In this document: one piece after another, positions 2,920 to 49,329 of the stretch | Layout of the letters: the number at the start of each line of letters is the position of its first letter | How positions within the stretch are numbered: the stretch's first letter is position 1 | Notes under the pieces: model-generated | The model's input: only the letters and a program-made list of their open reading frames with translations | What the model was told of the DNA's origin: nothing | Databases searched by the model: none | Program-made: the position numbers and the translations under genes | IMG/VR virus record: IMGVR_UViG_3300029258_003221 | Coordinates: 1-64,000 of that record | Length of the DNA: 64,000 nt | Direction: 5' to 3' (one strand)

Positions 2920-3378
2920 GTGTCTGCACAAAATCTTTCCATTGAACGACTCGAAAGCATTCTACAAAAACGTCGTTCTGATGCTCAGGATCTGGAAAAC
3001 AAAAGGAACAAACTTCTGGCTCAACTTGAAATCATCGACAACAAGTTGACAAAGATCAAAGGTGGGTCAACCACAAAGAAAACAAAAAGCCGATCTGTTG
3101 TTCGTGCAAGCAATGATCGACCGCTTCGTGCTTTTGTTGCTGATGCTCTGAAAAAGGAGCCTGCAAATTTGCAGGAAATCACTGACCGTGTGCTGAAAGC
3201 TGGATATAAATCCAACAGCTCTAAGTTCAAGAACGTTGTGTATCAAAGTCTTTTCCACAATGAAGAATTTGTTCATGACGCCAAAACAGGTCAGTATTCT
3301 TACAAAGCCAAGAAAAAGGCGGTGAAAAAGAAGACCACCAAGCGAACAACCAAGAAGAAGGTGGCGAAAAAGAACTGA
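2920..3378 (+). CDS. Coiled-coil plus winged-HTH DNA-binding protein with a Lys-rich histone-like tail
   Basis: N-terminal coiled coil; LRAFVADALKKEPANLQEITDRVLKAGYKSNSSKFKNVVYQSL; tail KAKKKAVKKKTTKRTTKKK. Confidence 0.65.
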   Translation: MSAQNLSIERLESILQKRRSDAQDLENKRNKLLAQLEIIDNKLTKIKGGSTTKKTKSRSVVRASNDRPLRAFVADALKKEPANLQEITDRVLKAGYKSNSSKFKNVVYQSLFHNEEFVHDAKTGQYSYKAKKKAVKKKTTKRTTKKKVAKKN

Positions 3379-3394
3379 TTTTTATTCAAGAATC

Positions 3395-3426
3395 AAAAAA
3401 GCCACTCCGAAAGGGGTGGCTTTTTT
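3395..3426 (+). terminator. Bidirectional Rho-independent terminator
   Basis: A6-gccactcc-gaaa-ggggtggc-T6. Confidence 0.9.
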
Positions 3427-3451
3427 ATTTGGAATACTCTAATATTCAACT

Positions 3452-3739
3452 ATGATTAAAGTACTTAAACTCACAACTGGCGAAGACATCATTGCAGATG
3501 TCGAAGTTTCCGAAAACACATATACGCTCAAACAATCTATTCGACTTTTGCTGACTCCTGAAGGAGGCGTAGTAATGATGCCATATGCACCGTTTTTGTC
3601 AACTGATACGGTTGACATCAAAGATGAATTGGTTGTTTTTTCAGGTGAACCTGAACCTAAATTGAAAAACTCTTACAATTCAAAGTTTGGCAATGGAATT
3701 GTTACTGCGGGTGCGGCTGATCTTAAGATCGTCACATGA
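3452..3739 (+). CDS. Sm-like protein of T4-like phages
   Basis: IKVLKLTTGEDII...MPYAP...EPEPKLKNSYNSKFGNGIV follows the pattern of the cyanophage-type Sm-like family. Confidence 0.7.
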   Translation: MIKVLKLTTGEDIIADVEVSENTYTLKQSIRLLLTPEGGVVMMPYAPFLSTDTVDIKDELVVFSGEPEPKLKNSYNSKFGNGIVTAGAADLKIVT

Positions 3740-4933: not shown

Positions 4934-4978
4934 GCCACAGACATTAATTTCACTGTCATTTTGACACAGGAGAAGATC

Positions 4979-5329
4979 ATGAAACCCGACACGTAGAACG
5001 TCAAACATTACAGCTATATCTTTGTCAGGGAAGACCTGACAACCTCTCAGCAGGCGGTACAATGCTGTCATGCCGCCATCAACGCCACTGCCAAATACGG
5101 TCTAGGCGATTTGCCAGACCATCCTTATCTTGTCATCTTGGCAGTCAAGAATGAATCCAAGTTGCTCCGGGTACAAAAATACCTGTCAGAGCACGGAATT
5201 CAGTTCTCTTCTTTTCACGAGTCTGATCTCGATAATGAGCTTACGGCTATTGCGACCGAGCCCATTAAAGAGCATCAACGTGCAATCTTCCGCAAGTATC
5301 AGTGCCTTAAACCAAGGGAGGCTGCGTGA
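4979..5329 (+). CDS. Pth2-like peptidyl-tRNA hydrolase with an in-frame TAG at codon 6 (4994-4996)
   Basis: AGGAG-N6-ATG; MKPDT*NVKHYSYIFVREDLTTSQQAVQCCHAAI...FHESDLDNELTAIATEP. The Pth2-type VRxDL/QxxHAA motif lies upstream of the ORF-track start 5111, and no alternative start codon lies between the TAG and the motif. Confidence 0.8.
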
Positions 5330-5511
5330 TGAGTCAAATCAAAGACCTTATCGAAGAACTAAAATCTCTTACCCGTTATGACATGGAAGTCAGAGAATAT
5401 GGTCGAACCAAATTTCGTGATTCACATGCTGAAGCACGTGAAGTGGTTTCTGGAGATGGAGACTGGGTGGAGTGGGAAGATATTGTTTATTTGATCAAGG
5501 AGTATGAATGA
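5326..5511 (+). CDS. Hypothetical protein
   Basis: ORF track; GTGA overlap with the upstream gene. Confidence 0.6.
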   Translation: MMSQIKDLIEELKSLTRYDMEVREYGRTKFRDSHAEAREVVSGDGDWVEWEDIVYLIKEYE

Positions 5512-5521
5512 GTTTGAATGT

Positions 5522-5671
5522 GGGACAGAGGTGGATTGGTTCACACAAACCAACAATTTGTTGTTGGCCTGCATGGGTTCGAGTCCTGACAGGATGCAAT
5601 GAATTGTTGGGGAGGCAGAATTGCCAGCCGTTTTCGGAACGGCCTTGCAGGTTCGATTCCTGCCTGTCCCA
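5522..5671 (+). ncRNA. Expanded tRNA-like RNA (150 nt)
   Basis: Perfect acceptor stem GGGACAG/CTGTCCC; Leu-like D-arm; perfect T-arm GCAGG-TTCGATT-CCTGC; long variable arm GCCGTT-TTCG-GAACGGC; extra hairpins where the anticodon arm should be. Confidence 0.6.
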
Positions 5672-5676
5672 CTTAT

Positions 5677-5751
5677 GGGTGCGTAGCTCAATTGGCAGAG
5701 CAGCGAGTTCTAGCCTCGTGTTTGTTGCAGGTTCGATCCCTGTCGCACCTT
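5677..5751 (+). tRNA. tRNA with anticodon CTA (amber suppressor), Trp-like body, no encoded CCA
   Basis: Cloverleaf: GGGTGCG/CGCACCT; GCTC/GAGC; GCGAG-TTCTAGC-CTCGT (CTA at 5710-5712); GCAGG-TTCGATC-CCTGT. Confidence 0.85.
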
Positions 5752-5756
5752 TTTTA

Positions 5757-5914
5757 CCGCAGGTAGCTCAGTTGGTAGAGCGTTGCTTGTGTTGAAGCTA
5801 AGACAATGGTGTACAACATTGAATTAGTGAATGCACACGTGCTGTCAAAAGTGGCCACTTTTGGCTGTCATGTAAACATAGCAGAGGTCGGAGGTTCGAG
5901 TCCTCAACTGCGGA
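5757..5914 (+). ncRNA. tRNA-like gene whose anticodon loop is replaced by a 92-nt structured segment
   Basis: CCGCAGG/ACTGCGG; GCTC-AGTTGGTA-GAGC; anticodon stem TTGCT(5783-87)/AGCAG(5880-84); AGGTC; GGAGG-TTCGAGT-CCTCA. Confidence 0.65.
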
Positions 5915-5954
5915 ATATTTTCATTTTTCCCCGGATAGAAAGGAAGAAGTTGTG

Positions 5955-6356
5955 ATGTAGAAATGGCATTGGAATCAAAAACTTGGACCTGAAAACTGTC
6001 CATACATGGTGCGATGGGTGTTTGATTTTTACTTCTTCACCATTCGTATTCATCATTGGCTTCATAGTGACGATTTGCGTCACCCCCATGATCATCCTTG
6101 GTCTTTTTGGGCCATTTGTTTGTGGGGCGGATACACAGATGTTTCACCAGATGGCGAGGACCGAGTGCGACCGGGAAGTGTACGGTTTCGCTCGGCTCTT
6201 CACCAACATTCTGTTAAAGTTGATGAAGGTGGATGTTGGACCATCCTTTTGACAGGACGTGAGCATCGTCGTTGGGGTTTTTGGGTTAATGGTAAGTTTC
6301 GTAAAAGAAACAAGTATTTCTATATGATGGGTCATCACAATCCATGTGATTCATAA
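5955..6356 (+). CDS. Cupin-like phage protein with an in-frame TAG directly after the start (5958-5960)
   Basis: AAGGAAG RBS then GTG ATG TAG AAA TGG CAT TGG, giving M*KWHWNQKLGPENCPYMVRW...HHWLHSDDLRHPHDHPW; the ORF-track start 6006 lacks an RBS. Confidence 0.7.
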
Positions 6357-18254: not shown

Positions 18255-18960
18255 TCAGGCCAAAGAACGTGCACGTCAAATTGGAAGGCTCCATGGCTCC
18301 ATCCGTGGAGGTGAAGGAAACTATACCGGATGTCTTCTCGAAGTGGCACACAAACTTTTGTTTGGTGGAAAGTTTTCATCTGGTGATGACATCTACGACT
18401 ATGATGTCCTCATGCCCGAGGATTGGTTCTATGCAGAACATGGACGTAGAGTAGACTGCAAAGCCAAAGAACGCACAGTTCCTCAAATGGACCCGGAATG
18501 GGATGCATCCATTGCTGATCACGCTGGCAAAGGCGTCACACAGAATTGTGACATTTATGCCTTTGGCAGCGTCTATGTGAATCGCTCACGGCAACCAACT
18601 TGGATATGGTTCATGGGTCTTATGTCCAAGAAAATCTATCTGGAAGGTCGTTCTCAAAACCCACAAGGGGAAGAAATTGATTCCAGAGGCAGACCCGTCA
18701 AACGGTGGAAAGACCTTGAAGACGGAGCCGAGTTCAGAAAGAAAGGTCTGCCCTATGATGACAATGGCTTCACCTGCCGAGAAGATTGCTGGAACCGAAC
18801 TTACAGTTACCTTGATCCATACAATGTCGATAAGCTTCCGCTGGAAGCTAAGAAAAAGGTGGCAACCGTGCTGGCTCAAGCCAAAAGGGAAAGATGGGAG
18901 AAAGCATCCATGTATCACATGTTAGGAATACCAAATGCAAAGCCCGTTAATCAATTATAG
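18220..18960 (+). CDS. Hypothetical protein, possible PD-(D/E)XK nuclease
   Basis: YDYDV...RVDCKAK pattern. Confidence 0.45.
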   Translation: MFRIPAITSLCDQAKERARQIGRLHGSIRGGEGNYTGCLLEVAHKLLFGGKFSSGDDIYDYDVLMPEDWFYAEHGRRVDCKAKERTVPQMDPEWDASIADHAGKGVTQNCDIYAFGSVYVNRSRQPTWIWFMGLMSKKIYLEGRSQNPQGEEIDSRGRPVKRWKDLEDGAEFRKKGLPYDDNGFTCREDCWNRTYSYLDPYNVDKLPLEAKKKVATVLAQAKRERWEKASMYHMLGIPNAKPVNQL

Positions 18961-25293: not shown

Positions 25294-25689
25294 TCACAAA
25301 ATAATCCGAGTTTCATAGGTCCAACTCCTGAAATGCCCTGAGCAATTCGCTATGGCAATTTGATGGAAAAGTGCACCGCCGCACACACTCACAGTCTCCA
25401 AGCTTTGGCCATAACTGTAATAAAATGACACGTGAGGATTCTCAGGAAACCAAGGCTGAACCGGGCTCACATGGTAATACAAGGCACTGAAATCCTCTCC
25501 GTATTCCGCTATTGGAGAGCCTTGTAAATTCAGGTAAACTGAGTTGAAATCACCTGATAGAAATGATTCAACTTCCTCTTTCTCTAAGAAAGAGTTGAGA
25601 GTCAGGTGAATTGGAAATCCATTCGTTAGGGAATTCCATGAATGCCTTTCGCTGGGCATCAACCAAACACACCATTTGAAGCTTTTCAT
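25294..25689 (-). CDS. Hypothetical protein
   Basis: ORF track; start refined. Confidence 0.45.
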   Translation of the reverse strand: MKSFKWCVWLMPSERHSWNSLTNGFPIHLTLNSFLEKEEVESFLSGDFNSVYLNLQGSPIAEYGEDFSALYYHVSPVQPWFPENPHVSFYYSYGQSLETVSVCGGALFHQIAIANCSGHFRSWTYETRIIL

Positions 25690-31336: not shown

Positions 31337-32443
31337 TCATATCTCCGTCGAACTGGCGGCGATGTATTCTAAATTACAACTGGCATTGAAGTCTCGGTCG
31401 TGGTGAGTTCCACATCCATCGCAATCCCATTCTCGGTCTGCCAAGGTCAAGTTTTGATTGATCTGACCGCAAATCGAACATGCTTTGCTGGATGGGAAGA
31501 AACGATCCACAGGGACGATCCTGCATCCATACCAAGTTCCTTTATATTCCAGTTGTCTTCTACACTCGAAAAATCCAATATCTGCGATTGATCGAGATAA
31601 TCTTCTGTTCTTCAACATTCCAGACACATTCAAGTCTTCAATTCCAATCGCACGCTTGGTTTTCGCTAATGCTGTTGTCATCTTGTGTAATGTATCTTTA
31701 CGAATGTTGCTGATCTTGAAGTAGAGCCGAGCAAGACGGTTCGCCGCTTTCTTTCGGTTCTGACTTCCTTTTTGTTTGCGACTCAAACTTCTGTTGAGCC
31801 GCTTGAGTTTCCTTAGTTTTTTCTTGAGCGGTTTCGGGTTCTCAAAGGTTGTCCCATCGCTCACGGTTGCCAGTGTTTTGATCCCCAAATCCATACCAAC
31901 CACATCATGTTCGTCCTTCTGGATATTGGGTTCTAACATATCTTCTTCAACTTGAATGCTGACAAACCACCTACCTGCTCTTTCACTTACAGTTGCCGAC
32001 AATATCTTGGCATCGGTTGGCAGGTATCCACTTTCTTTGAGTTTTAGTTTTCCAAGTCTCGGAAGTTGGATTGTTTTCTCTGTTACTTTGATCGTTCCCG
32101 TCAGTCGAAACCCGCCGATGCCTTTTCTCTTACTCTTGAATTTCGGGAACTTTCCTCGCTTCTTGAAGAAATTGTCAAAAGCACGATCTAGGTTTCTAAG
32201 GGCTTCCTGTGGGCTACATTTGCTGACTTCATACATCCAAGGGAATGTATCTTTCTTGAGGTCGTTGAGGCGACGGTGAAGTTCAATGGCGTTGGGAATC
32301 TTATCTTTGACTTCCATCGCTTGCTTCTTCTGGTTCATGCCCCAATTATATGTGAACCTAGCAGCACCAGCATGTTTTAGACATGCGGTTCGCTGCTTGT
32401 TGTTCAACCTCAATTCGGTCTTATAGCCCCTCTGTATCTTCAC
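31337..32443 (-). CDS. tnpB: TnpB RNA-guided nuclease
   Basis: RuvC I VGMDLGIK, RuvC II GIEDLNV, zinc finger CSICG...CDGCG, RuvC III DRDFNAS. Confidence 0.96.
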   Translation of the reverse strand: MKIQRGYKTELRLNNKQRTACLKHAGAARFTYNWGMNQKKQAMEVKDKIPNAIELHRRLNDLKKDTFPWMYEVSKCSPQEALRNLDRAFDNFFKKRGKFPKFKSKRKGIGGFRLTGTIKVTEKTIQLPRLGKLKLKESGYLPTDAKILSATVSERAGRWFVSIQVEEDMLEPNIQKDEHDVVGMDLGIKTLATVSDGTTFENPKPLKKKLRKLKRLNRSLSRKQKGSQNRKKAANRLARLYFKISNIRKDTLHKMTTALAKTKRAIGIEDLNVSGMLKNRRLSRSIADIGFFECRRQLEYKGTWYGCRIVPVDRFFPSSKACSICGQINQNLTLADREWDCDGCGTHHDRDFNASCNLEYIAASSTEI

Positions 32444-32861
32444 ACTCCTCCTCTGCTATGAACTTGCCGAAATCATGTTCATTGAACTCAGCAGTTTCAT
32501 AGACATCCCATCCAAGAACAACAGGGTCTTCGCCAACAGGCAAAGGCTGTCCATGTCCATCTAACAATGTGCCATCACGTTTTACATCAATGTGTTTAGC
32601 TCGCCAGCCATCGTACCAAAAGCCACCACGATTGAATGTGATGCAACCTTTGGGTTTGTATTCAACAACAATGTCAAATGTTGCTTCCTGCCCCATACTA
32701 ACAGGCTTGCGTTGCTTGAATTCTTTGATCTTGCAACTTTTGGGTTCTTTGCTCATCCACTCTGTTTCATTCAACTTATTCATTAGACCAAACATCAACT
32801 TTGTTGGGTCTTTCGTAACCAACTCGAACTTCAAGTAAGTTGGATTCACATTATCGGTCAT
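32421..32861 (-). CDS. Cargo hypothetical protein
   Basis: ORF track; overlaps both neighbours. Confidence 0.7.
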   Translation of the reverse strand: MTDNVNPTYLKFELVTKDPTKLMFGLMNKLNETEWMSKEPKSCKIKEFKQRKPVSMGQEATFDIVVEYKPKGCITFNRGGFWYDGWRAKHIDVKRDGTLLDGHGQPLPVGEDPVVLGWDVYETAEFNEHDFGKFIAEEECEDTEGL

Positions 32862-34849
32862 GCAACCTCCTTCAAATAATGTTCTCTCGCCGCCGCAGCT
32901 TCCTCTATGGTGTCATAAGTCCCGACACTTTGACGACCAACTCTTGCTGACCATCTCCCATTGGCTTGTTTGTAAACACCCTTATGTCCAGAGCCAGCCA
33001 ATTTTTGGCAATCGCATTTTGAGTTTGCCTTCATATTGCCGGGCAATCGTTGAAACTCTTTGCCATGCTCGCACCTGACTGTCACATACTCAAAAAATCC
33101 AGCATATTCTGACGCCAACTCCCACCCTTTATCCTCAAGAAACTGCAACAATTTTTGCTTTCCGTAATCCAAGCAGTTAGTTCTTACACAATCGCATTGG
33201 GCGTGTGGCCGCACGGCAGATCGACGCTTCATAGTGAAAACTTCACCATGTTCGCACCTAATTTGGATTTCACCCTCGCCACTATATTCAGATAGCAACT
33301 CCCACCCACGATTGGCAAAGATTTCAGTCAAGTTATCCTTACCCATCTCAGTCATTCTTTCGCCAGAGGCGATGTCGCAACAACGTGGACAACCACACTC
33401 GTTCTTGAAGTTCTGCACCAGCGTCGTCCAGACATGACCCTTATCGCACTGGATGGTCATATCTCCGTAGTATCCTTTATACTCCGAGAGACGCTTCCAG
33501 CCCCTCCGCTCCATCTCAGTGTCAATAATTTGAGTTTGGTGTTCTTTATCTTGCGGACGTTTAGATGAATAATCCCAAGAGTAGAATTTCTCTTTCTTGC
33601 AATCCATCGAAACAGACGAATCTTCGTAAAGCCAATCTCTAATTCGGAGTGCTGGCGTTCCACTGTAGCTGAACAATGACGCTGTGGAGTTCTTTAGTTC
33701 TCGATCATACTCCTCTTTGCTTCGGTCTATCACAGTATTCTTCGAGACATTGGCTTCTTCAACAATGACATCCACCACATCCTCAAGGAATTTAGGAACA
33801 GCCCCGCAAATGCTGAATGTTGGAGTTTTGTAAACCTTATGCCTGTATTTCGTAGTGCCAACGCTCACTGACCCGTCGCCATCGAAAAGTCCTCGGATGA
33901 AGTGTCTTCTCAACTCTTTAGGAATATCAGGAAAAGAAACAAGAAAGGTTTTGTTCGGAATAACGCCATGTTTCATCAAGGCTTCTACGAAACCAGTGTG
34001 ACAACATTCAAGAGTGTATTTGGTTTTCTTTCCGCCCTTATTTTTGCTGCTCACATGATATGGACCAAGAACCTTGCCTGTATATCCGATTGCATCCTTG
34101 AACTTCTCTAAATGTCTCTTCCCTTCTACAACCAACGAAATACGAAGCCGGTGTGGATTGAGTGCAACTGATCCGTCTGCATAGATGAACCCAAGCCAAT
34201 ATGCCTTTTCTTCTGTGTCTATCTCATCAAAGAAGTTGAAATCAAATGTGTATTTTCTAATCAAACCAGCAGAGCGGCGACTGCCAACTTTCAGTGTTAC
34301 TGCACGCCCGATGATGGCATTCCAAGTTCTATTGGGCAAGCCAGCTTGGATGAACTCTTGACTTTCCTTGGTGTAACTTGAGCGAAGAAAATCATCTTCC
34401 TCAGATGACCACGAAAAATCAGGCTTACTCAAGCCCAGTTTGACCGCCTTGTTCCTAATCTCGGATTCAGTCTTGTCTGAAAGCAATTCAAGCAATTCCG
34501 AATTGCTCATGGTGGCATAATTGGATTTCAACAAATCTAACTCTTTAGAAGTCCATTTCTTTCGCTTTCTGGTAAGCCCCAATCGGCAGGCTCTATCTTT
34601 GATTGCCTTGTATTTGCGGTTCGGAAGCAAATTCGACCATTGATCGGCTGCGATCTTGCCATAATACTGCCTGACAACATCATCTTCCGCCAACTGCCAT
34701 TTAGTATCTTGCGTCAAGCCAAGCCGAGATAATTTGTGTCTTATAGAAGTGTCACTCTTATCCAACTCGTTACTCAACCAATCAGTCGGTTTATCCGCAT
34801 TTTCTACAAGAAATGCCTCTTCTTTCTTAGTCCAATGCTTTCCGCTCAT
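32858..34849 (-). CDS. Multidomain LAGLIDADG endonuclease: 4 Myb-like repeats, double LAGLIDADG, 3 Zn-ribbon repeats, AP2-like domain
   Basis: WTxxE repeats; YWLGFIYADGSV and FIRGLFDGDGSV; GW.LLSEY...C..GH...C repeats; SGHKGVY...GRWSARV...GTYDTIEEAAAAR. Confidence 0.9.
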   Translation of the reverse strand: MSGKHWTKKEEAFLVENADKPTDWLSNELDKSDTSIRHKLSRLGLTQDTKWQLAEDDVVRQYYGKIAADQWSNLLPNRKYKAIKDRACRLGLTRKRKKWTSKELDLLKSNYATMSNSELLELLSDKTESEIRNKAVKLGLSKPDFSWSSEEDDFLRSSYTKESQEFIQAGLPNRTWNAIIGRAVTLKVGSRRSAGLIRKYTFDFNFFDEIDTEEKAYWLGFIYADGSVALNPHRLRISLVVEGKRHLEKFKDAIGYTGKVLGPYHVSSKNKGGKKTKYTLECCHTGFVEALMKHGVIPNKTFLVSFPDIPKELRRHFIRGLFDGDGSVSVGTTKYRHKVYKTPTFSICGAVPKFLEDVVDVIVEEANVSKNTVIDRSKEEYDRELKNSTASLFSYSGTPALRIRDWLYEDSSVSMDCKKEKFYSWDYSSKRPQDKEHQTQIIDTEMERRGWKRLSEYKGYYGDMTIQCDKGHVWTTLVQNFKNECGCPRCCDIASGERMTEMGKDNLTEIFANRGWELLSEYSGEGEIQIRCEHGEVFTMKRRSAVRPHAQCDCVRTNCLDYGKQKLLQFLEDKGWELASEYAGFFEYVTVRCEHGKEFQRLPGNMKANSKCDCQKLAGSGHKGVYKQANGRWSARVGRQSVGTYDTIEEAAAAREHYLKEVA

Positions 34850-46803: not shown

Positions 46804-49329
46804 TTACATTTCTGAAAAATCTATCTCTTCTTCATCCTGCTCTTTAGCGTAATCCTTGATATCCAGATTGTATTTCTGAATATCTTCTTCTGTTGGATCA
46901 GGTAAAGGCGTGGCTCCTGTTGGTCCTTCCATTCCGCCTGATGGGCCTTGATCATCTCCTGTTGGAGCAGGTGCTCCACCCATTCCCATATCATCTTCAC
47001 CGCCTTCTTCACCTTCTGGCGGTTGATCTCCCAACATAGGACTTGGTCCACCAGCTTCTCCACCAATTTCGGTTTCGTCTGGTCCGGGAAGTCCAACGCC
47101 CAAAAGCATTGGGTTTTGAGCAATGATTTGGAGTTTGAGTTCTTCCATCTTTTGGATTTTAAGACGAGCAAGCATCTTCAGAGCTTCTTCTTCATCGTAT
47201 TTCATCCACTTGGTAAGAATATCAAAGTCCGACATGAGTTGTGCTCCTTTCAAAGCACCGGCGTTTTGAATTCTACCAGCTACAACTTCTGATCTTGTTA
47301 GCTCACGCCAATCAGAAGGTGGAGTTAACTTAATTTCCAAATCCTCATAGGCTTCTTTTGGGAAACCAAGCAGCGTTAAGTGACGGTTGCAAATTTCCCA
47401 AAAAGCGTTCTGAATGTGAGATTGAAGTCGTTCGATCATGCGAGCGAACTTCACATCCTGTGCAGACAGGGTGATTCTTGTACTTTGAACATCTTCGTTA
47501 TTGAAATAGTTCTTAGGGAAATTCAGAGCTGTAAACAGTTTATTTCTGAAGTAGACTGTATCATCGATTTCACCAAGATTCTGAGCACCCGGTAAAGTTT
47601 CAACTCTTGTGTTGGAGTTGGGCCTAACAGGAATCCAGTAATCTTCATCGGCTGCTGGTGCGTGCCAACGTTCTTCAACACTGGAGGCACCCGGCAATCC
47701 AGATTTTCCGGTAGCAACCTTTTTCTTTTTGAACTGATCTTTCATTCGTTCAACAAAGGCTTCCGCCCTGTAAGGCGGAAGCTGGAACGTGTCAATATAG
47801 AACACTCTACGTTCTGGTGCTCTTGTCAATCGATAAACCACCATGGCATCTTCCATCAATCTCAATTGATGAGCAGGTCCACGTGCTGCTTCAATAAGAC
47901 TTACACCATATGGATAGAATGTTTGTCTATCATCCCCGACACGAATATGCACAACCTGATCTGCTGCGAATCTAATAGCTGTAGCTTGTTGTAAATCTGC
48001 TTCTGTTGCCTGTGTGACTTCCACACGGGAAAGGCTTTGGTAGTCAGGCCCTTCTTTAGACTGTTGGAATTCAACCAATTTTCCTTTGGTTGTTTCAATT
48101 CGATACATGCTGTCAGGAGGCAATGGAACAAGACCTACGATACCATGTTTAGGGTTTTCCAAATCAATAATGACTTCATAAAAGAAGTCGCCCATGATGA
48201 ATAATCTTTTGGCCATGTCCCAACATGTATTTTGGTCCATATTAAGCATGTCACGATGAAACAATAGATATTCACATTCTTCTTTGACTGATTCATTGCC
48301 GCAAACAACCTGCATTACTCTGCCATCTTCATTTTTCTGGCAATTGTGAACAACTCCCCAGTTTGTACAGAAGTTATGATGTTTCTCAACAGTTAGGTCA
48401 TAGACATCAATCTCTTCCCAAGGTTGTATTCCGACAACTCTTCTTCGATCTTCTTTGCGACCGAGCCATTTCATCTCTTTGTTTGAGAATCCAGCTTTTT
48501 CGATTCGGCTTTTAATTGTCTTGAAGTCATGACCTGTCATGTCAACAATCTGCTGAGTCGTCAATCCTTCAGAGATGTATCGACAAAGTTTGTTAACGCT
48601 TTCAAGTTCAGGATTGTCTTTGCCCGTAGCCCATTCGTCGGCAAACTGTCGTTCGTGAATCCAGCCTTTGCGATGAGTATAAATTCTAGGGAACTGATTG
48701 ACTTTGATTTCGGTAATATCCGGGTTTGGCGAAATGCGATAGAAAGGCATGAGTTCATCACCGGAATTTAGTTCACCTGCTTCTCTCCATGTACCTTTTC
48801 TGGTCATAATTCGGTGATCAGGTGTGCAGATCACATAATTGCCATCATCAAAAATGATTTTGATTGTTTTGGCTTTTTTGGTTTTACGTGCATCAAATGC
48901 CCAGCCAAGCGTATAATCGCCTTTATCCTGATCATAGCAATAGACTAAGAATCGCTCGTTTTCATTGACGAGATCTTCGATCTTTTTATATCCATGTGGT
49001 GTGGCGATAAGAGTATCGCCAGCCAAACAGGTCTCATCTGCGAAAACGGTCATTGCCATTTCGATTTCCGGCATATTTCGCAGTCGTTCGTATTCTTTGT
49101 AGCGATGAACTCTATTAGTGACGGTACTTAAATCTACGAAATCATTAGTGTCTCGAAGGCGAATGGCCCCTCGTCCACCACCTGTAGTTCCGTCATTGCC
49201 ACCCCTGATGTCAGGAATAGCTCCATCAACTGGATATCCCGCTCCACTGGCATCTCGGTCTCTGCGTCTTGCGAGTGGATCATCAGTGAAAGCGTAAGTG
49301 AAAGTTTTGAAATAATCCCACCAAGCCAT
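46804..49329 (-). CDS. gp20: Portal protein, T4 gp20-like, with an intein
   Basis: RLMEDAMVVYRLTRAPERRVFYID, EDYWIP, VETLPGAQNLGEIDD, FARMIERLQ. Confidence 0.96.
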   Translation of the reverse strand: MAWWDYFKTFTYAFTDDPLARRRDRDASGAGYPVDGAIPDIRGGNDGTTGGGRGAIRLRDTNDFVDLSTVTNRVHRYKEYERLRNMPEIEMAMTVFADETCLAGDTLIATPHGYKKIEDLVNENERFLVYCYDQDKGDYTLGWAFDARKTKKAKTIKIIFDDGNYVICTPDHRIMTRKGTWREAGELNSGDELMPFYRISPNPDITEIKVNQFPRIYTHRKGWIHERQFADEWATGKDNPELESVNKLCRYISEGLTTQQIVDMTGHDFKTIKSRIEKAGFSNKEMKWLGRKEDRRRVVGIQPWEEIDVYDLTVEKHHNFCTNWGVVHNCQKNEDGRVMQVVCGNESVKEECEYLLFHRDMLNMDQNTCWDMAKRLFIMGDFFYEVIIDLENPKHGIVGLVPLPPDSMYRIETTKGKLVEFQQSKEGPDYQSLSRVEVTQATEADLQQATAIRFAADQVVHIRVGDDRQTFYPYGVSLIEAARGPAHQLRLMEDAMVVYRLTRAPERRVFYIDTFQLPPYRAEAFVERMKDQFKKKKVATGKSGLPGASSVEERWHAPAADEDYWIPVRPNSNTRVETLPGAQNLGEIDDTVYFRNKLFTALNFPKNYFNNEDVQSTRITLSAQDVKFARMIERLQSHIQNAFWEICNRHLTLLGFPKEAYEDLEIKLTPPSDWRELTRSEVVAGRIQNAGALKGAQLMSDFDILTKWMKYDEEEALKMLARLKIQKMEELKLQIIAQNPMLLGVGLPGPDETEIGGEAGGPSPMLGDQPPEGEEGGEDDMGMGGAPAPTGDDQGPSGGMEGPTGATPLPDPTEEDIQKYNLDIKDYAKEQDEEEIDFSEM
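48343..49029 (-). mobile_element. Intein (229 aa) in the portal
   Basis: N-terminal CLAGDTLIAT, block B CTPDHRIMT, C-terminal VYDLTVEKHHNF...VVHN followed by +1 Cys. Confidence 0.95.

Follow-up and report, generated by a model that had tools for sequence, protein, structure and literature searches.

Suppressor tRNAs have repeatedly been reported in jumbo and T4-like phages that use the standard genetic code, without any known target. For instance, Xanthomonas phage XacN1 is reported to carry CUA suppressors, and its authors explicitly could not find targets for them (PMC5852040). The locus described here, from a T4-like phage, raises this question in a sharper form: what is decoded by a tRNA that reads the UAG stop codon, when it is flanked by two genes that each begin with that same stop codon, in a phage that otherwise appears to read TAG as an ordinary terminator?

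We analysed a window of 64,000 nucleotides, this being the whole stretch of DNA examined (positions 1 to 64,000 of IMG/VR record IMGVR_UViG_3300029258_003221, from a genome of 234 kb). An initial annotation, made from the sequence alone, had pointed to a Pth2-like gene and a cupin-like gene with early in-frame TAG codons on either side of a tRNA with anticodon CTA, and had proposed a local translational switch that makes both proteins only when the phage suppressor outcompetes host RF1. The observation itself is confirmed, as everything that was described is present in the sequence, and it is much stronger than could be known from this sequence alone. By contrast, the interpretation is supported only in part: the local, gene-specific use of TAG holds, as does the position of both codons after good SD/start pairs and before conserved protein sequence, but there are no expression data to show that competition with RF1 sets the output, and the additional idea that the hydrolase would report termination or drop-off stress is speculation that nothing in our analysis tests.

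Anatomy of the locus

The features of the locus are listed in Table 1.

Table 1. Positions, in the window, of the features discussed in the text.
Position	Strand	Feature	Remarks
4954-4966	+	Conserved motif TGTCATTTTGACA	12 nt upstream of the ATG; role unknown
4968-4972	+	Shine-Dalgarno AGGAG of the PTH2-like gene	AGGAGAAGA is conserved in relatives
4979-5329	+	PTH2-like gene	ATG (4979-4981), four sense codons (K-P-D-T), in-frame TAG, 110-codon PTH2 domain, stop TGA (5327-5329)
4994-4996	+	In-frame TAG of the PTH2-like gene (proposed gate codon 1)	Preceded by ACG (Thr), followed by A
5111	+	TTG, first ATG/GTG/TTG after this TAG	38 codons in
5329-5511	+	60-aa ORF	Its ATG overlaps the PTH2 stop (TGATG); probably translationally coupled; not conserved in relatives
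5522-5671	+	tRNA-shaped RNA	Large internal insert, including an extra T-arm-like hairpin
5677-5751	+	Suppressor tRNA, anticodon CUA	Anticodon loop UU-CUA-GC; elongator-type cloverleaf
5757-5914	+	tRNA-shaped RNA	Anticodon loop replaced by an insert of about 90 nt; directly upstream of the cupin gene
5940-5946	+	Shine-Dalgarno-like AAGGAAG of the cupin gene	Relatives have TTTTGGAGA at the same place
5952	+	GTG	Upstream of the cupin ATG
5955-6356	+	Small cupin-like gene (PHROG 4786 family)	ATG (5955-5957), in-frame TAG, 131 codons, stop TAA (6354-6356)
5958-5960	+	In-frame TAG of the cupin gene (proposed gate codon 2)	Codon 2, followed by A
6006	+	First in-frame ATG after this TAG	15 residues lie between the two

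In the first gene, the domain begins 3 residues after the TAG. Pfam PTH2 (PF01981) matches residues 7-93 of the post-TAG translation over profile positions 4-103 of 115 (E=1.3e-7, 32.2 bits against a cutoff of 23), and a profile of 43 relatives hits the PDB peptidyl-tRNA hydrolase 24bt_A at E=5e-7. An AF2 model built from a 43-sequence alignment (pLDDT 95.9) places strand beta1 at residues 4-11 after the TAG, and its top 15 Foldseek hits in the PDB are all Pth2 or Bit1 structures (TM 0.70-0.79), whereas an alignment of only 10 close relatives had given an uninformative model (pLDDT 53). Initiation at the first canonical start after the TAG would delete beta1 and helix 1 with the invariant Q..HA motif. 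Although the family match and the predicted fold are clear over the whole domain, the phage family lacks the conserved Lys of the canonical GK loop, a residue that is important in the Sulfolobus enzyme. In alignments to 24bt, 2zv3 and 1rzw, the loop before the Q..HA helix is 2 residues shorter and has Q or other residues where the canonical enzymes have GK, while the R.DL, VQ..HA and acidic E.D motifs are kept. Consequently, even the substrate is uncertain, and hydrolysis of peptidyl-tRNA was not assayed. A scan of genome contigs found no convincing cellular homologue, only a 17-residue match.

The second gene matches PHROG 4786, a family associated with tRNA clusters (a point not made by the initial annotation), at E=1.5e-32, and its invariant residues include H..HDH and H.H. 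The match to solved Cupin_2 proteins in the PDB is only weak (E=0.03), no Pfam family matched, and the 'cysteine dioxygenase' label of the PHROG family is an annotation rather than a tested function. The residues between the TAG and the first in-frame ATG align with the conserved N-terminus of the family, W.QKLG...CPY. Scoring across the TAGs by codon-usage log-odds was too weak to be informative for genes this short. The small ORF after the PTH2-like gene has the strongest codon-usage score in the region, but no Pfam or PHROG family matched it.

The suppressor tRNA was called by ARAGORN and matches the Rfam tRNA model (RF00005) over its full length, with 52.2 bits against a gathering score of 29. 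Orthologous CUA tRNAs occur in L002-L007, L010, L012 and L017 (L numbers designate the related loci that were compared). The anticodon loop in the window is unusual in having G37/C38 instead of the classic CUA-AA loop, and the 29 distinct CUA tRNAs compared with other phage tRNAs show no consistent isotype. The inserted amino acid, the host and the RF1 background are all unknown. The initial annotation did not mention the two tRNA-shaped RNAs with large inserts that flank this tRNA. The upstream one scores 29.4 bits with the Rfam tRNA model and is not called by ARAGORN, although an orthologue is visible in L012 at about 3343-3495. The downstream one scores 33.4 bits, and seven orthologues keep the acceptor, D, anticodon and T stems, with compensatory changes in 22 of 32 pairs. 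Weak Rfam YrlA hits at 5645-5701 and 5722-5782 straddle the T-arm of one tRNA and the D-arm of the next, and were rejected as artefacts of adjacent tRNAs.

Upstream of the PTH2-like gene, TG[TC]CA[TC]TTTGACA is kept in L002, L005, L007, L012, L013 and L014. However, no sigma-70 -10 element lies at a suitable distance, promoter and terminator scans gave nothing above shuffled expectation, and a general phage promoter was rejected because the motif has only one exact copy in the 64 kb.

The rest of the window uses the standard code. TAG ends ordinary ORFs at 18958, 21129, 24692 and 28487, as had been noted initially, and 10 of 97 long ORFs in all, while portal, capsid (gp23) and terminase genes are uninterrupted. 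Stop-to-stop ORFs of at least 100 aa cover 89% of the window under code 11, and reading TAG as sense gives the smallest gain of the three stops. A scan for an SD, a start, an early TAG and a long ORF with a distant first start found only these two credible cases in the window. Additionally, the readthrough tails of the 10 TAG-terminated ORFs are 1-52 codons long and show no sign of being functional.

Conservation of the early TAG in other large phages

The initial annotation had proposed, as a test, to collect homologous loci and ask whether the TAG position is conserved and co-occurs with a CTA tRNA, and this comparison came out positive across many unrelated phages. About 35 of about 37 distinct PTH2-like genes from unrelated large phages carry one in-frame TAG within the first 2-8 codons (such genes are called gated hereafter). 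Eleven distinct close relatives (60-85% identity) all have M-x(1-4)-TAG, as do 19 of 20 distant IMG/VR loci (32-50% identity) and L029, L039, L042 and L060. The locus search used a 16-sequence alignment, as no stretch of the 43-sequence alignment was conserved enough. Seven of 8 cultured jumbo or T4-like phages examined are also gated, and the cultured carriers include Cronobacter GAP32, Pectobacterium CBB, Acinetobacter ME3, Salmonella Arash, Ralstonia RsoM2USA and Xanthomonas XacN1/Xoo-sp13. The cassette is widespread and includes cultured phages, which the initial annotation missed.

The TAG stays 1-7 codons from the start, while its distance to the domain ranges from 3 to about 190 residues. 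Among 26 strictly scored loci, the base after the TAG (+4) is A in 16, G in 9 and C in 1, the preceding codon is Thr in 16, and a tRNA(CUA) lies within the fetched flanks in 17. In GAP32 and CBB this tRNA is annotated 3-4 kb away. The association is not absolute, as L109-111, L113, L117, L120 and RsoM2USA are gated but show no CUA tRNA within the flanks. The gate is not obligatory either, since L116 has a CUA tRNA but an ungated gene, and RaK2 is ungated.

For the cupin gene, ATG-x-TAG is conserved in L002, L003, L004, L005-7, L010 and L012, the gene is gated in all loci of the window's group, and an early TAG also occurs in L025, L028, L029 and L042, although most of the family is ungated. 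A CUA tRNA lies within 4 kb in 3 of 5 gated loci against 4 of 75 others (hypergeometric P of about 0.004, ignoring relatedness), whereas L031/L032 have a CUA tRNA with an ungated cupin.

These comparisons exclude chance and effectively refute the idea that the TAGs are sequencing or assembly errors, or that the genes are pseudogenes. Scattered stops with pseudogene-like decay in the homologues had been named in advance as an outcome that would contradict the switch, but each gene has a single stop at a conserved place (with the exception of L120, see below), downstream protein conservation is strong and the AF2 model is confident. Although the window is a metagenomic assembly for which reads were not examined, the same feature appears in dozens of independent assemblies and in at least 7 finished genomes of cultured phages. 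The identical 1378 bases also occur in a second public record, L011, but we cannot say that this assembly is independent.

How the UAG codons may be used

We consider it more likely than not, though far from certain, that this is a conserved phage cassette in which the phage-encoded amber-suppressor tRNA(CUA) licenses translation of two small enzymes encoded beside it, a PTH2-fold (peptidyl-tRNA-hydrolase-like) protein and a small metal-binding cupin. In this view, each mRNA has a normal ribosome-binding site and start codon, followed within 1-7 sense codons by a single UAG. Without the charged suppressor, ribosomes would terminate after a 1-5-residue peptide and no enzyme would be made, as no alternative start codon precedes the first essential strand and helix of the domain, while with the suppressor the UAG would be read as a sense codon, yielding the full-length protein. 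Output would then be gated by, and proportional to, the activity of the phage's own tRNA cluster set against host RF1. Our analysis demonstrates the anatomy of the cassette, the need to translate through the TAG to obtain the complete fold, the deep conservation of an early TAG in two gene families, its co-occurrence with CUA tRNAs, the suppression-friendly purine at +4 and the standard code elsewhere in the window. On the other hand, it is by inference that we attribute readthrough to this tRNA, and also that we take the early position to serve control rather than the insertion of a special residue, given that the position is conserved relative to the start codon and not to the domain, and falls in a non-conserved N-terminal stretch. 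The purpose of the gate (timer, homeostat or compensation) is likewise inferred. We prefer a feed-forward interlock, in which enzymes that act on tRNA or peptidyl-tRNA are made only when, and as far as, phage tRNAs and suppression are active, although this rationale rests on an activity that has not been measured. No expression, proteomic or ribosome-profiling data exist for the cassette.

An alternative purpose, which we regard as only tentative, is an autoregulatory homeostat analogous to RF2. The PTH2-like enzyme would act on the suppressor tRNA itself, in its aminoacyl or peptidyl form, or on the short peptidyl-tRNAs released at early UAGs, so that more suppression would make more enzyme, which in turn would lower suppression and clamp readthrough of genuine TAG stops at a set point. 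An early in-frame stop in a translation-termination-related gene is exactly the logic of prfB (an established analogy that was not tested here), the gate is nearly universal in this PTH2-like clade but only sporadic in the cupin family, the phage still uses TAG as a real stop in about 10% of ORFs, which need protection, and the divergence at the catalytic loop is compatible with a changed substrate. However, nothing shows that the enzyme touches tRNA(CUA), the model does not explain why the cupin is gated too, and L116 keeps the tRNA with an ungated enzyme.

It could also be argued that the TAGs reflect incipient or partial code-15 recoding, as in-frame TAGs may be tolerated once a suppressor is present and accumulate neutrally or in late genes, these two simply being the ones that fall in the window. 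Phage TAG recoding with CUA tRNAs is well documented, an evolutionary path through standard-code phages acquiring suppressors has been proposed (Borges et al. preprint), L120 has a second TAG, and 170 kb of this genome, where other TAG-containing genes may exist, was not examined. Nevertheless, we consider this unlikely, since the TAGs are not scattered: there is one per gene, always in the first 2-8 codons, in the same two families across very distant phages, and none in structural genes or in any other gene of the 64 kb. Scattered in-frame TAGs in many genes would contradict the gate, and a search for other gated genes found none in 49 kb of GAP32 or 50 kb of ME3. Code-11 coverage is already high in the window and in related loci. 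Of the additional candidates considered, GAP32_440 has no support because the PHROG profile starts at the annotated Met, position 25384 of ME3 lies inside the upstream gene in another frame, and L025:5163 matched no family.

A tRNA-independent control by a leader mini-ORF, in which the 1-5-codon ORF terminates at UAG and the enzyme is made by reinitiation, with the suppressor tRNA being coincidental or serving other targets, seems less likely still. Minigenes and start-stop elements act as regulators, and an ATG follows the TAG within 0-19 codons in XacN1, Xoo-sp13, L108 and L113, and in the cupin of L002, where termination-reinitiation could serve. By contrast, in most loci there is no ATG/GTG/TTG between the TAG and the conserved beta1 strand, and the residues immediately after the TAG are conserved as protein. 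Moreover, the stop is always TAG, never TAA or TGA, in about 35 lineages, which only a CUA reader explains, and the second in-frame TAG of L120, which lies inside the domain, cannot be bypassed by reinitiation and can be rescued only by readthrough. Initiation at the UAG itself by an initiator-like tRNA was rejected, because most of these tRNAs have a paired 1-72 position, their anticodon stems lack the three G:C pairs, and the SD/ATG lies up to 7 codons upstream of the TAG.

Finally, insertion of a special amino acid that the proteins need, in the manner of pyrrolysine, is very unlikely. ARAGORN labels the tRNA 'tRNA-Pyl', and the tRNA sits next to UAG-containing genes as pylT does, but the label follows from the anticodon alone and the tRNA fits the general tRNA model over all 71 positions with an ordinary D-loop. 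The UAG also lies in a non-conserved N-terminal stretch whose length and position vary. No synthetase or biosynthetic genes were seen among the neighbours scanned, which show Rieske, methyltransferase and other unrelated families, although the whole genome was not searched for pylS/pylBCD.

Comparison with described systems

Our literature searches, in agreement with the initial annotation, found no published description of this architecture, and we regard it as a form of phage stop-codon recoding that differs from those described. In crAss-like, Lak and other gut phages, TAG is recoded to Gln (code 15) by phage suppressor tRNAs (Ivanova 2014; Yutin 2021; Borges et al. 2021/22; Peters 2022). 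Both cases involve a phage-encoded tRNA(CUA) and in-frame TAGs in a phage of a presumably standard-code host, and in both recoding is proposed to control when proteins are made. However, in the recoded phages many TAGs are scattered through many, mostly late, structural and lysis genes, coding density collapses under code 11 and TAG is no longer a stop, while here only two small non-structural genes next to the tRNA are affected. In prfB, an in-frame stop near the 5′ end also makes output depend on how efficiently that stop is recognised, but RF2 uses a +1 frameshift at UGA with an internal SD stimulator, and the product recognises its own stop. Here, the conserved protein continues in the zero frame directly after the TAG, bypass needs a dedicated tRNA, and any feedback of the PTH2-like enzyme on UAG decoding is unproven.

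In the pyrrolysine (pylT with UAG-containing methyltransferase genes) and selenocysteine systems, a dedicated stop-codon-reading tRNA is likewise encoded close to the few genes that contain the stop, but in our locus no dedicated synthetase or biosynthetic genes were seen among the neighbours scanned, there is no recoding signal, and the codon is not at a functional site of the protein. The bar minigenes of lambda share with this cassette very short ORFs ending in a stop, which are classic sources of peptidyl-tRNA drop-off linked to peptidyl-tRNA hydrolase function; the lambda case is established and was not tested here. They are free-standing and toxic only when Pth is limiting, whereas here the 'minigene' is the head of the hydrolase gene itself and, in our model, is meant to be read through. 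Synthetic amber-codon gates, such as orthogonal tRNA-dependent expression and biocontainment switches, also use an N-terminal amber codon to make expression conditional on a specific suppressor tRNA (for example PMC6412442), and this cassette appears to be a natural, widely conserved counterpart of those engineered systems.

The finding supplies a specific, conserved target class, and a testable logic, for suppressor tRNAs of standard-code phages, and suggests that phage stop-codon recoding can act as a single-codon control device, not only as a block-wise or genome-wide code change. It also ties a phage PTH2-like enzyme and a tRNA-cluster cupin functionally to suppression, which gives a handle on two families of unknown role, and several carriers are cultured phages of easily grown hosts. 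A bolder possibility, about as likely as not, is a natural, self-contained 'amber interlock' conserved across many large standard-code phages, in which the dedicated targets of the suppressor tRNA, a PTH2-like enzyme and, in some lineages, a cupin, form a feedback or feed-forward circuit that measures and tunes stop-codon suppression during infection. If so, it would be the first gene-specific stop-codon gate outside the Sec and Pyl systems, and would answer what suppressor tRNAs do in phages that are not recoded.

PTH2 genes have been noted in jumbo phages as RNA-repair or ribosome-rescue accessories (Iyer et al. 2021, PMC7824862), in the same protein family and the same kind of phages, but that survey mentions neither the in-frame TAG nor any link to suppressor tRNAs. 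A systematic annotation error is also exposed, as these genes are truncated, split or missing in the GenBank records of GAP32, CBB, Arash, RsoM2USA and ME3, and in Arash the CUA tRNA is labelled tRNA-Phe.

Early TAG codons and genomic context of the locus

The 234,631-bp IMG/VR contig, of which the first 64 kb were read, belongs to a T4-like myovirus, with a gp20-type portal, a gp23 capsid protein, a T4-type large terminase and 41% G+C. The portal gene carries an intein, recognized as a Pfam Intein_splicing match at residues 113-329, ahead of the portal domain. Additionally, a TnpB / IS605 OrfB-type gene (OrfB_IS605 plus a Cas12f-like TNB domain) sits inside the phage genome, and the neighbouring 663-aa ORF has a LAGLIDADG-like segment. 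Under the standard bacterial code, stop-to-stop ORFs of at least 100 aa already cover 89% of the window, and treating TAG as sense gives the smallest gain of the three stops. Ten of 97 long ORFs end in TAG, including the four that the initial annotation had cited as ordinary terminators.

The observation made in that annotation, namely a tRNA with anticodon CTA between two genes with early in-frame TAG codons, was confirmed, and all of the elements are where it had placed them, although no sequencing reads were examined. In the first gene, Pfam PTH2 matches from residue 7 after the TAG (profile position 4 of 115) with E=1.3e-7, above the curated cutoff. With a 43-sequence alignment, AlphaFold2 gives a confident model (pLDDT 95.9), in which strand beta1 occupies residues 4-11 after the TAG and helix 1 occupies residues 16-34, and the 15 best Foldseek matches in the PDB are all Pth2 or Bit1 structures (TM 0.70-0.79 over the whole length). 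A product started at the first canonical start codon after the TAG would therefore lack beta1 and the helix carrying the invariant VQ..HA motif, and, thus, the fold needs translation through the TAG. The tRNA fits the general tRNA model end to end at 52 bits.

The second gene belongs to a large phage family (PHROG 4786, annotated “cysteine dioxygenase”, E=1.5e-32), while its matches to solved Cupin_2 proteins are weak. The 15 residues between its TAG and the first in-frame ATG align with the conserved N-terminus of the family, W.QKLG...CPY. A window-wide scan for an SD and a start codon followed by an early TAG and a long ORF whose first start is far away recovered only these two credible cases, and no region becomes convincingly coding only when TAG is read through.

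Positions of the features in the window, in homologous loci (L handles, fetched from sequence databases) and in GenBank records
Record	Position	Strand	Feature
Window	4954-4966	+	Motif TGTCATTTTGACA, 12 nt upstream of the PTH2-like start
Window	4968-4972		AGGAG of the PTH2-like gene
Window	4979		ATG of the PTH2-like gene, followed by four sense codons (K-P-D-T)
Window	4994-4996		In-frame TAG of the PTH2-like gene
Window	5111		TTG, first canonical start after the TAG, 38 codons in
Window	5327-5329		TGA ending the PTH2-like gene
Window	5329-5511	+	60-aa ORF, ATG overlapping the PTH2 stop (TGATG)
Window	5522-5671	+	tRNA-like element of 150 nt
L012	about 3343-3495		Corresponding tRNA-like element
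Window	5677-5751		tRNA with anticodon CUA
Window	5757-5914	+	tRNA-shaped RNA with an insert in place of the anticodon loop
L002; L003; L010; L012; L004; L005	3724-3888; 3510-3649; 3578-3715; 3587-3727; 4057-4199; 896-1033		Orthologues of the tRNA-shaped RNA at 5757-5914
Window	5940-5946		AAGGAAG of the cupin gene
Window	5955		ATG of the cupin gene, preceded by GTG
Window	5958-5960		In-frame TAG of the cupin gene, followed by 131 codons
Window	6006		First in-frame ATG after the TAG of the cupin gene
Window	6354-6356		TAA ending the cupin gene
Window	31337-32443 and 32858-34849	-	TnpB / IS605 OrfB-type gene and neighbouring 663-aa ORF
Window	46804-49329	-	T4-type portal (gp20) gene with intein
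L002; L005; L004; also L003, L004 and L010	3563-3710; 736-882; 3723-3869; just downstream of the PTH2-like gene		tRNA-Ile-like genes with an insert and mini tRNA-like hairpin of related tRNA clusters
L020	3940-4000		Region showing a tRNA or tRNA-like gene immediately upstream of the cupin gene (also cupin loci L024-L067)
L120	3944-4312		PTH2-like gene with two in-frame TAGs
OQ632216 (Arash)	49176-49247		tRNA labelled tRNA-Phe, anticodon CTA according to ARAGORN
MG752970	about 68877-69200		PTH2-like gene

Distribution of the early TAG among homologous genes

The initial annotation had put forward the collection of homologous loci as a test of its proposal, asking whether the TAG position is conserved and co-occurs with a CTA tRNA, and the result of this comparison was striking. 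Among close relatives of the PTH2-like protein (60-85% identity), obtained from protein databases and metagenomes, all eleven distinct sequences read M-x(1-4)-TAG at the homologous place, although gene callers either truncated them at an internal GTG (“MREDL...”) or translated the TAG as Q under code 15. Wherever at least 400 nt of downstream sequence exists, a tRNA(CUA) follows; loci L003 and L012 have two, and L004, on a 693-kb contig, also has a tRNA(UCA). In every one of these loci with enough sequence, the cupin gene is also present downstream of the tRNAs and reads SD-ATG-x-TAG.

A second search of IMG/VR, aimed at distant relatives (32-50% identity), gave 20 further loci from contigs of 17-572 kb. 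Nineteen of them have a single in-frame TAG 1-7 codons after a start codon and just before the domain, and thirteen have a tRNA(CUA) within 4 kb, while one metagenomic locus, L116, is not gated. Four more gated PTH2-like genes were found inside loci fetched for the cupin (L029, L039, L042 and L060). In addition, tblastn found the family in 38 records, mostly of jumbo phages, and, of the 8 distinct cultured phages that were opened, 7 are gated, whereas Klebsiella RaK2 is not. Overall, about 35 of about 37 distinct genes are headed by TAG, and the codon is never TAA or TGA, although the loci are related to each other and, consequentially, these counts are not independent events. Several gated loci lack a CUA tRNA within the fetched flanks.

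Early TAG and tRNA(CUA) in the seven gated cultured phages
Phage	Gate	tRNA(CUA)
Cronobacter GAP32	ATG GCA CAA TAG	Annotated “Sup-tRNA” 3 kb downstream
Pectobacterium CBB	ATG GCA CAA TAG	Annotated “tRNA-Pyl” 3.7 kb downstream
Acinetobacter ME3	ATG ACT TAG	Annotated “anticodon CTA” tRNA 0.4 kb upstream
Salmonella Arash	ATG CTG TAG	1.3 kb downstream, mislabelled tRNA-Phe
Ralstonia RsoM2USA	ATG TTG TAG	None found within the flanks; the gene is unannotated
Xanthomonas XacN1	ATG AAG TAG	CUA suppressors reported elsewhere in the genome
Xanthomonas Xoo-sp13	ATG AAG AAG TAG	Not confirmed

Because of the in-frame TAG, the PTH2-like genes are annotated truncated, split or not at all in GenBank records JN882285 (GAP32_397), KU574722 (CBB_406), OQ632216 (Arash gp84c/gp85c), MG752970 and KU935715 (ME3_195). 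In the Xanthomonas jumbo phages (XacN1 ORF364, locus L125, and Xoo-sp13 gp327, locus L132), the PTH2-like domain is fused to an N-terminal extension of about 185 aa containing an H..HDIGKP-type motif, and the early TAG sits ahead of the whole fusion.

The TAG keeps its distance from the start codon (1-7 sense codons), while its distance from the domain varies from 3 residues in the window to about 35 in L113, one of the gated loci, and about 190 in XacN1, and it falls in a stretch with no residue conservation. In 26 strictly scored cases, the base after it is A (16), G (9) or C (1), and the codon before it is Thr in 16. By contrast, the ten genuine TAG terminators of the window are followed by a purine in only five cases. 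In classical suppressor genetics, a 3′ purine favours amber suppression, an effect that was not tested here. Furthermore, the PTH2-like gene of locus L120 has two in-frame TAGs, one at codon 6 and one inside the domain, before the DHPHLV strand. Together, these characteristics argue that the codon is decoded, that what is inserted matters little and that the early position itself is selected, which is the signature of a control device and not of a special residue.

These genes are not simply a case of code 15. In related loci, code-11 ORF coverage is generally already high and, beyond the two families, no convincing gated gene was found in the window, in 49 kb of the tRNA region of GAP32 or in 50 kb of ME3. 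Most of the cupin family is ungated, and two ungated examples had no CUA tRNA within 4 kb. Among the 80 cupin loci from IMG/VR, a CUA tRNA lies within 4 kb in 3 of 5 gated loci and in 4 of 75 others (hypergeometric P of about 0.004, uncorrected for relatedness).

A suppressor-dependent gate as the best-supported account

The initial annotation proposed a local translational switch, and this interpretation was partly supported: a suppressor-dependent translational gate is the best explanation, but its physiological purpose is unproven. In this model, ribosomes would initiate normally, meet UAG after 1-7 codons and either terminate or, if charged tRNA(CUA) wins against RF1, continue into the enzyme. 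As the tRNA lies between the two genes on the same strand, it is probably co-transcribed with them, and enzyme output would then follow the functional output of the tRNA cluster. The early position may limit waste, avoid truncated proteins and let a terminating ribosome occlude the start site. While the early TAG and its recurrence in other phages were observed directly, these advantages are all inferred; the host is unknown, and there are no expression data. In a few loci, an ATG shortly after the TAG could allow reinitiation instead. The 60-aa ORF that overlaps the PTH2 stop, which has a strong coding signal, no detectable family and no counterpart in related loci, may be coupled to the PTH2-like gene.

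As for the reason for gating these enzymes, we favour an interlock or compensation model, in which enzymes that act on tRNA or peptidyl-tRNA are made only when phage tRNAs and suppression are active, but a homeostat analogous to RF2 autoregulation is a serious alternative. In any case, the phage family keeps the R.DL, VQ..HA and acidic motifs but lacks the Lys of the canonical GK loop, which is two residues shorter here. “Peptidyl-tRNA hydrolase” is, therefore, a fold-level assignment and not a demonstrated activity. The inserted amino acid is also unknown. The 29 distinct CUA tRNAs that were collected are diverse and resemble no single isotype. Most of them have the classic CU/UU-CUA-AA loop, while that of the window has UU-CUA-GC, with an apparent G1-U72 pair and U73.

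The closest known phenomenon is TAG recoding by suppressor tRNAs in gut phages, which shares the tRNA and the idea of translational timing. We consider the present case a form of phage stop-codon recoding that differs from it in scale, in gene class and in the stereotyped early position. A comparative survey of jumbo phages lists PTH2 as an RNA-repair or ribosome-rescue accessory without mentioning stop codons or suppressors. The XacN1 paper reports two CUA suppressor genes per terminal repeat and states that no target genes could be identified, and other papers treat such tRNAs as unexplained. Full-text searches of an incomplete collection of the literature found no description of early-TAG-gated genes, although prior description elsewhere cannot be excluded, and we regard the finding as one of high interest.

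tRNA-like RNAs and the upstream motif

The motif upstream of the PTH2-like start is unique in the window and conserved in relatives as TG[TC]CA[TC]TTTGACA. As the hairpin is imperfect in some relatives, it may be a protein-binding or operator site.

The tRNA-shaped RNA next to the cupin gene keeps its acceptor, D, anticodon and T stems, with compensatory changes in 22 of 32 pairs, but its anticodon loop is replaced by a 70-110-nt insert with the shared motif AAGTGGCCAC / AAGTGATCAC. It always lies directly upstream of the cupin gene and could be an intron-containing tRNA or a tRNA-like structural RNA; tRNA “introns” in jumbo phages are mentioned in PMC13037316. The second tRNA-like element of the window has a good acceptor stem and T-arm, an internal extra T-arm-like hairpin and no normal anticodon loop. 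It scores 29.4 bits on the Rfam tRNA model, and ARAGORN does not call it.

Across many unrelated phages, the cupin gene starts immediately downstream of a tRNA or tRNA-like gene, and the upstream “protein” conservation GVAQRQSAAQ...RSV.R.HP is a translated D-arm and T-arm, which suggests a functional or processing link between this cupin and a tRNA. Additionally, related tRNA clusters hold tRNA-Ile-like genes (anticodon GAU or UAU) with an insert of about 75 nt in the variable region, as well as a conserved mini tRNA-like hairpin of about 60 nt (acceptor plus T-arm only). The tRNA(UCA) of L004 is next to its tRNA(CUA), and another locus, L030, has a tRNA(UCA) directly upstream of its cupin gene.
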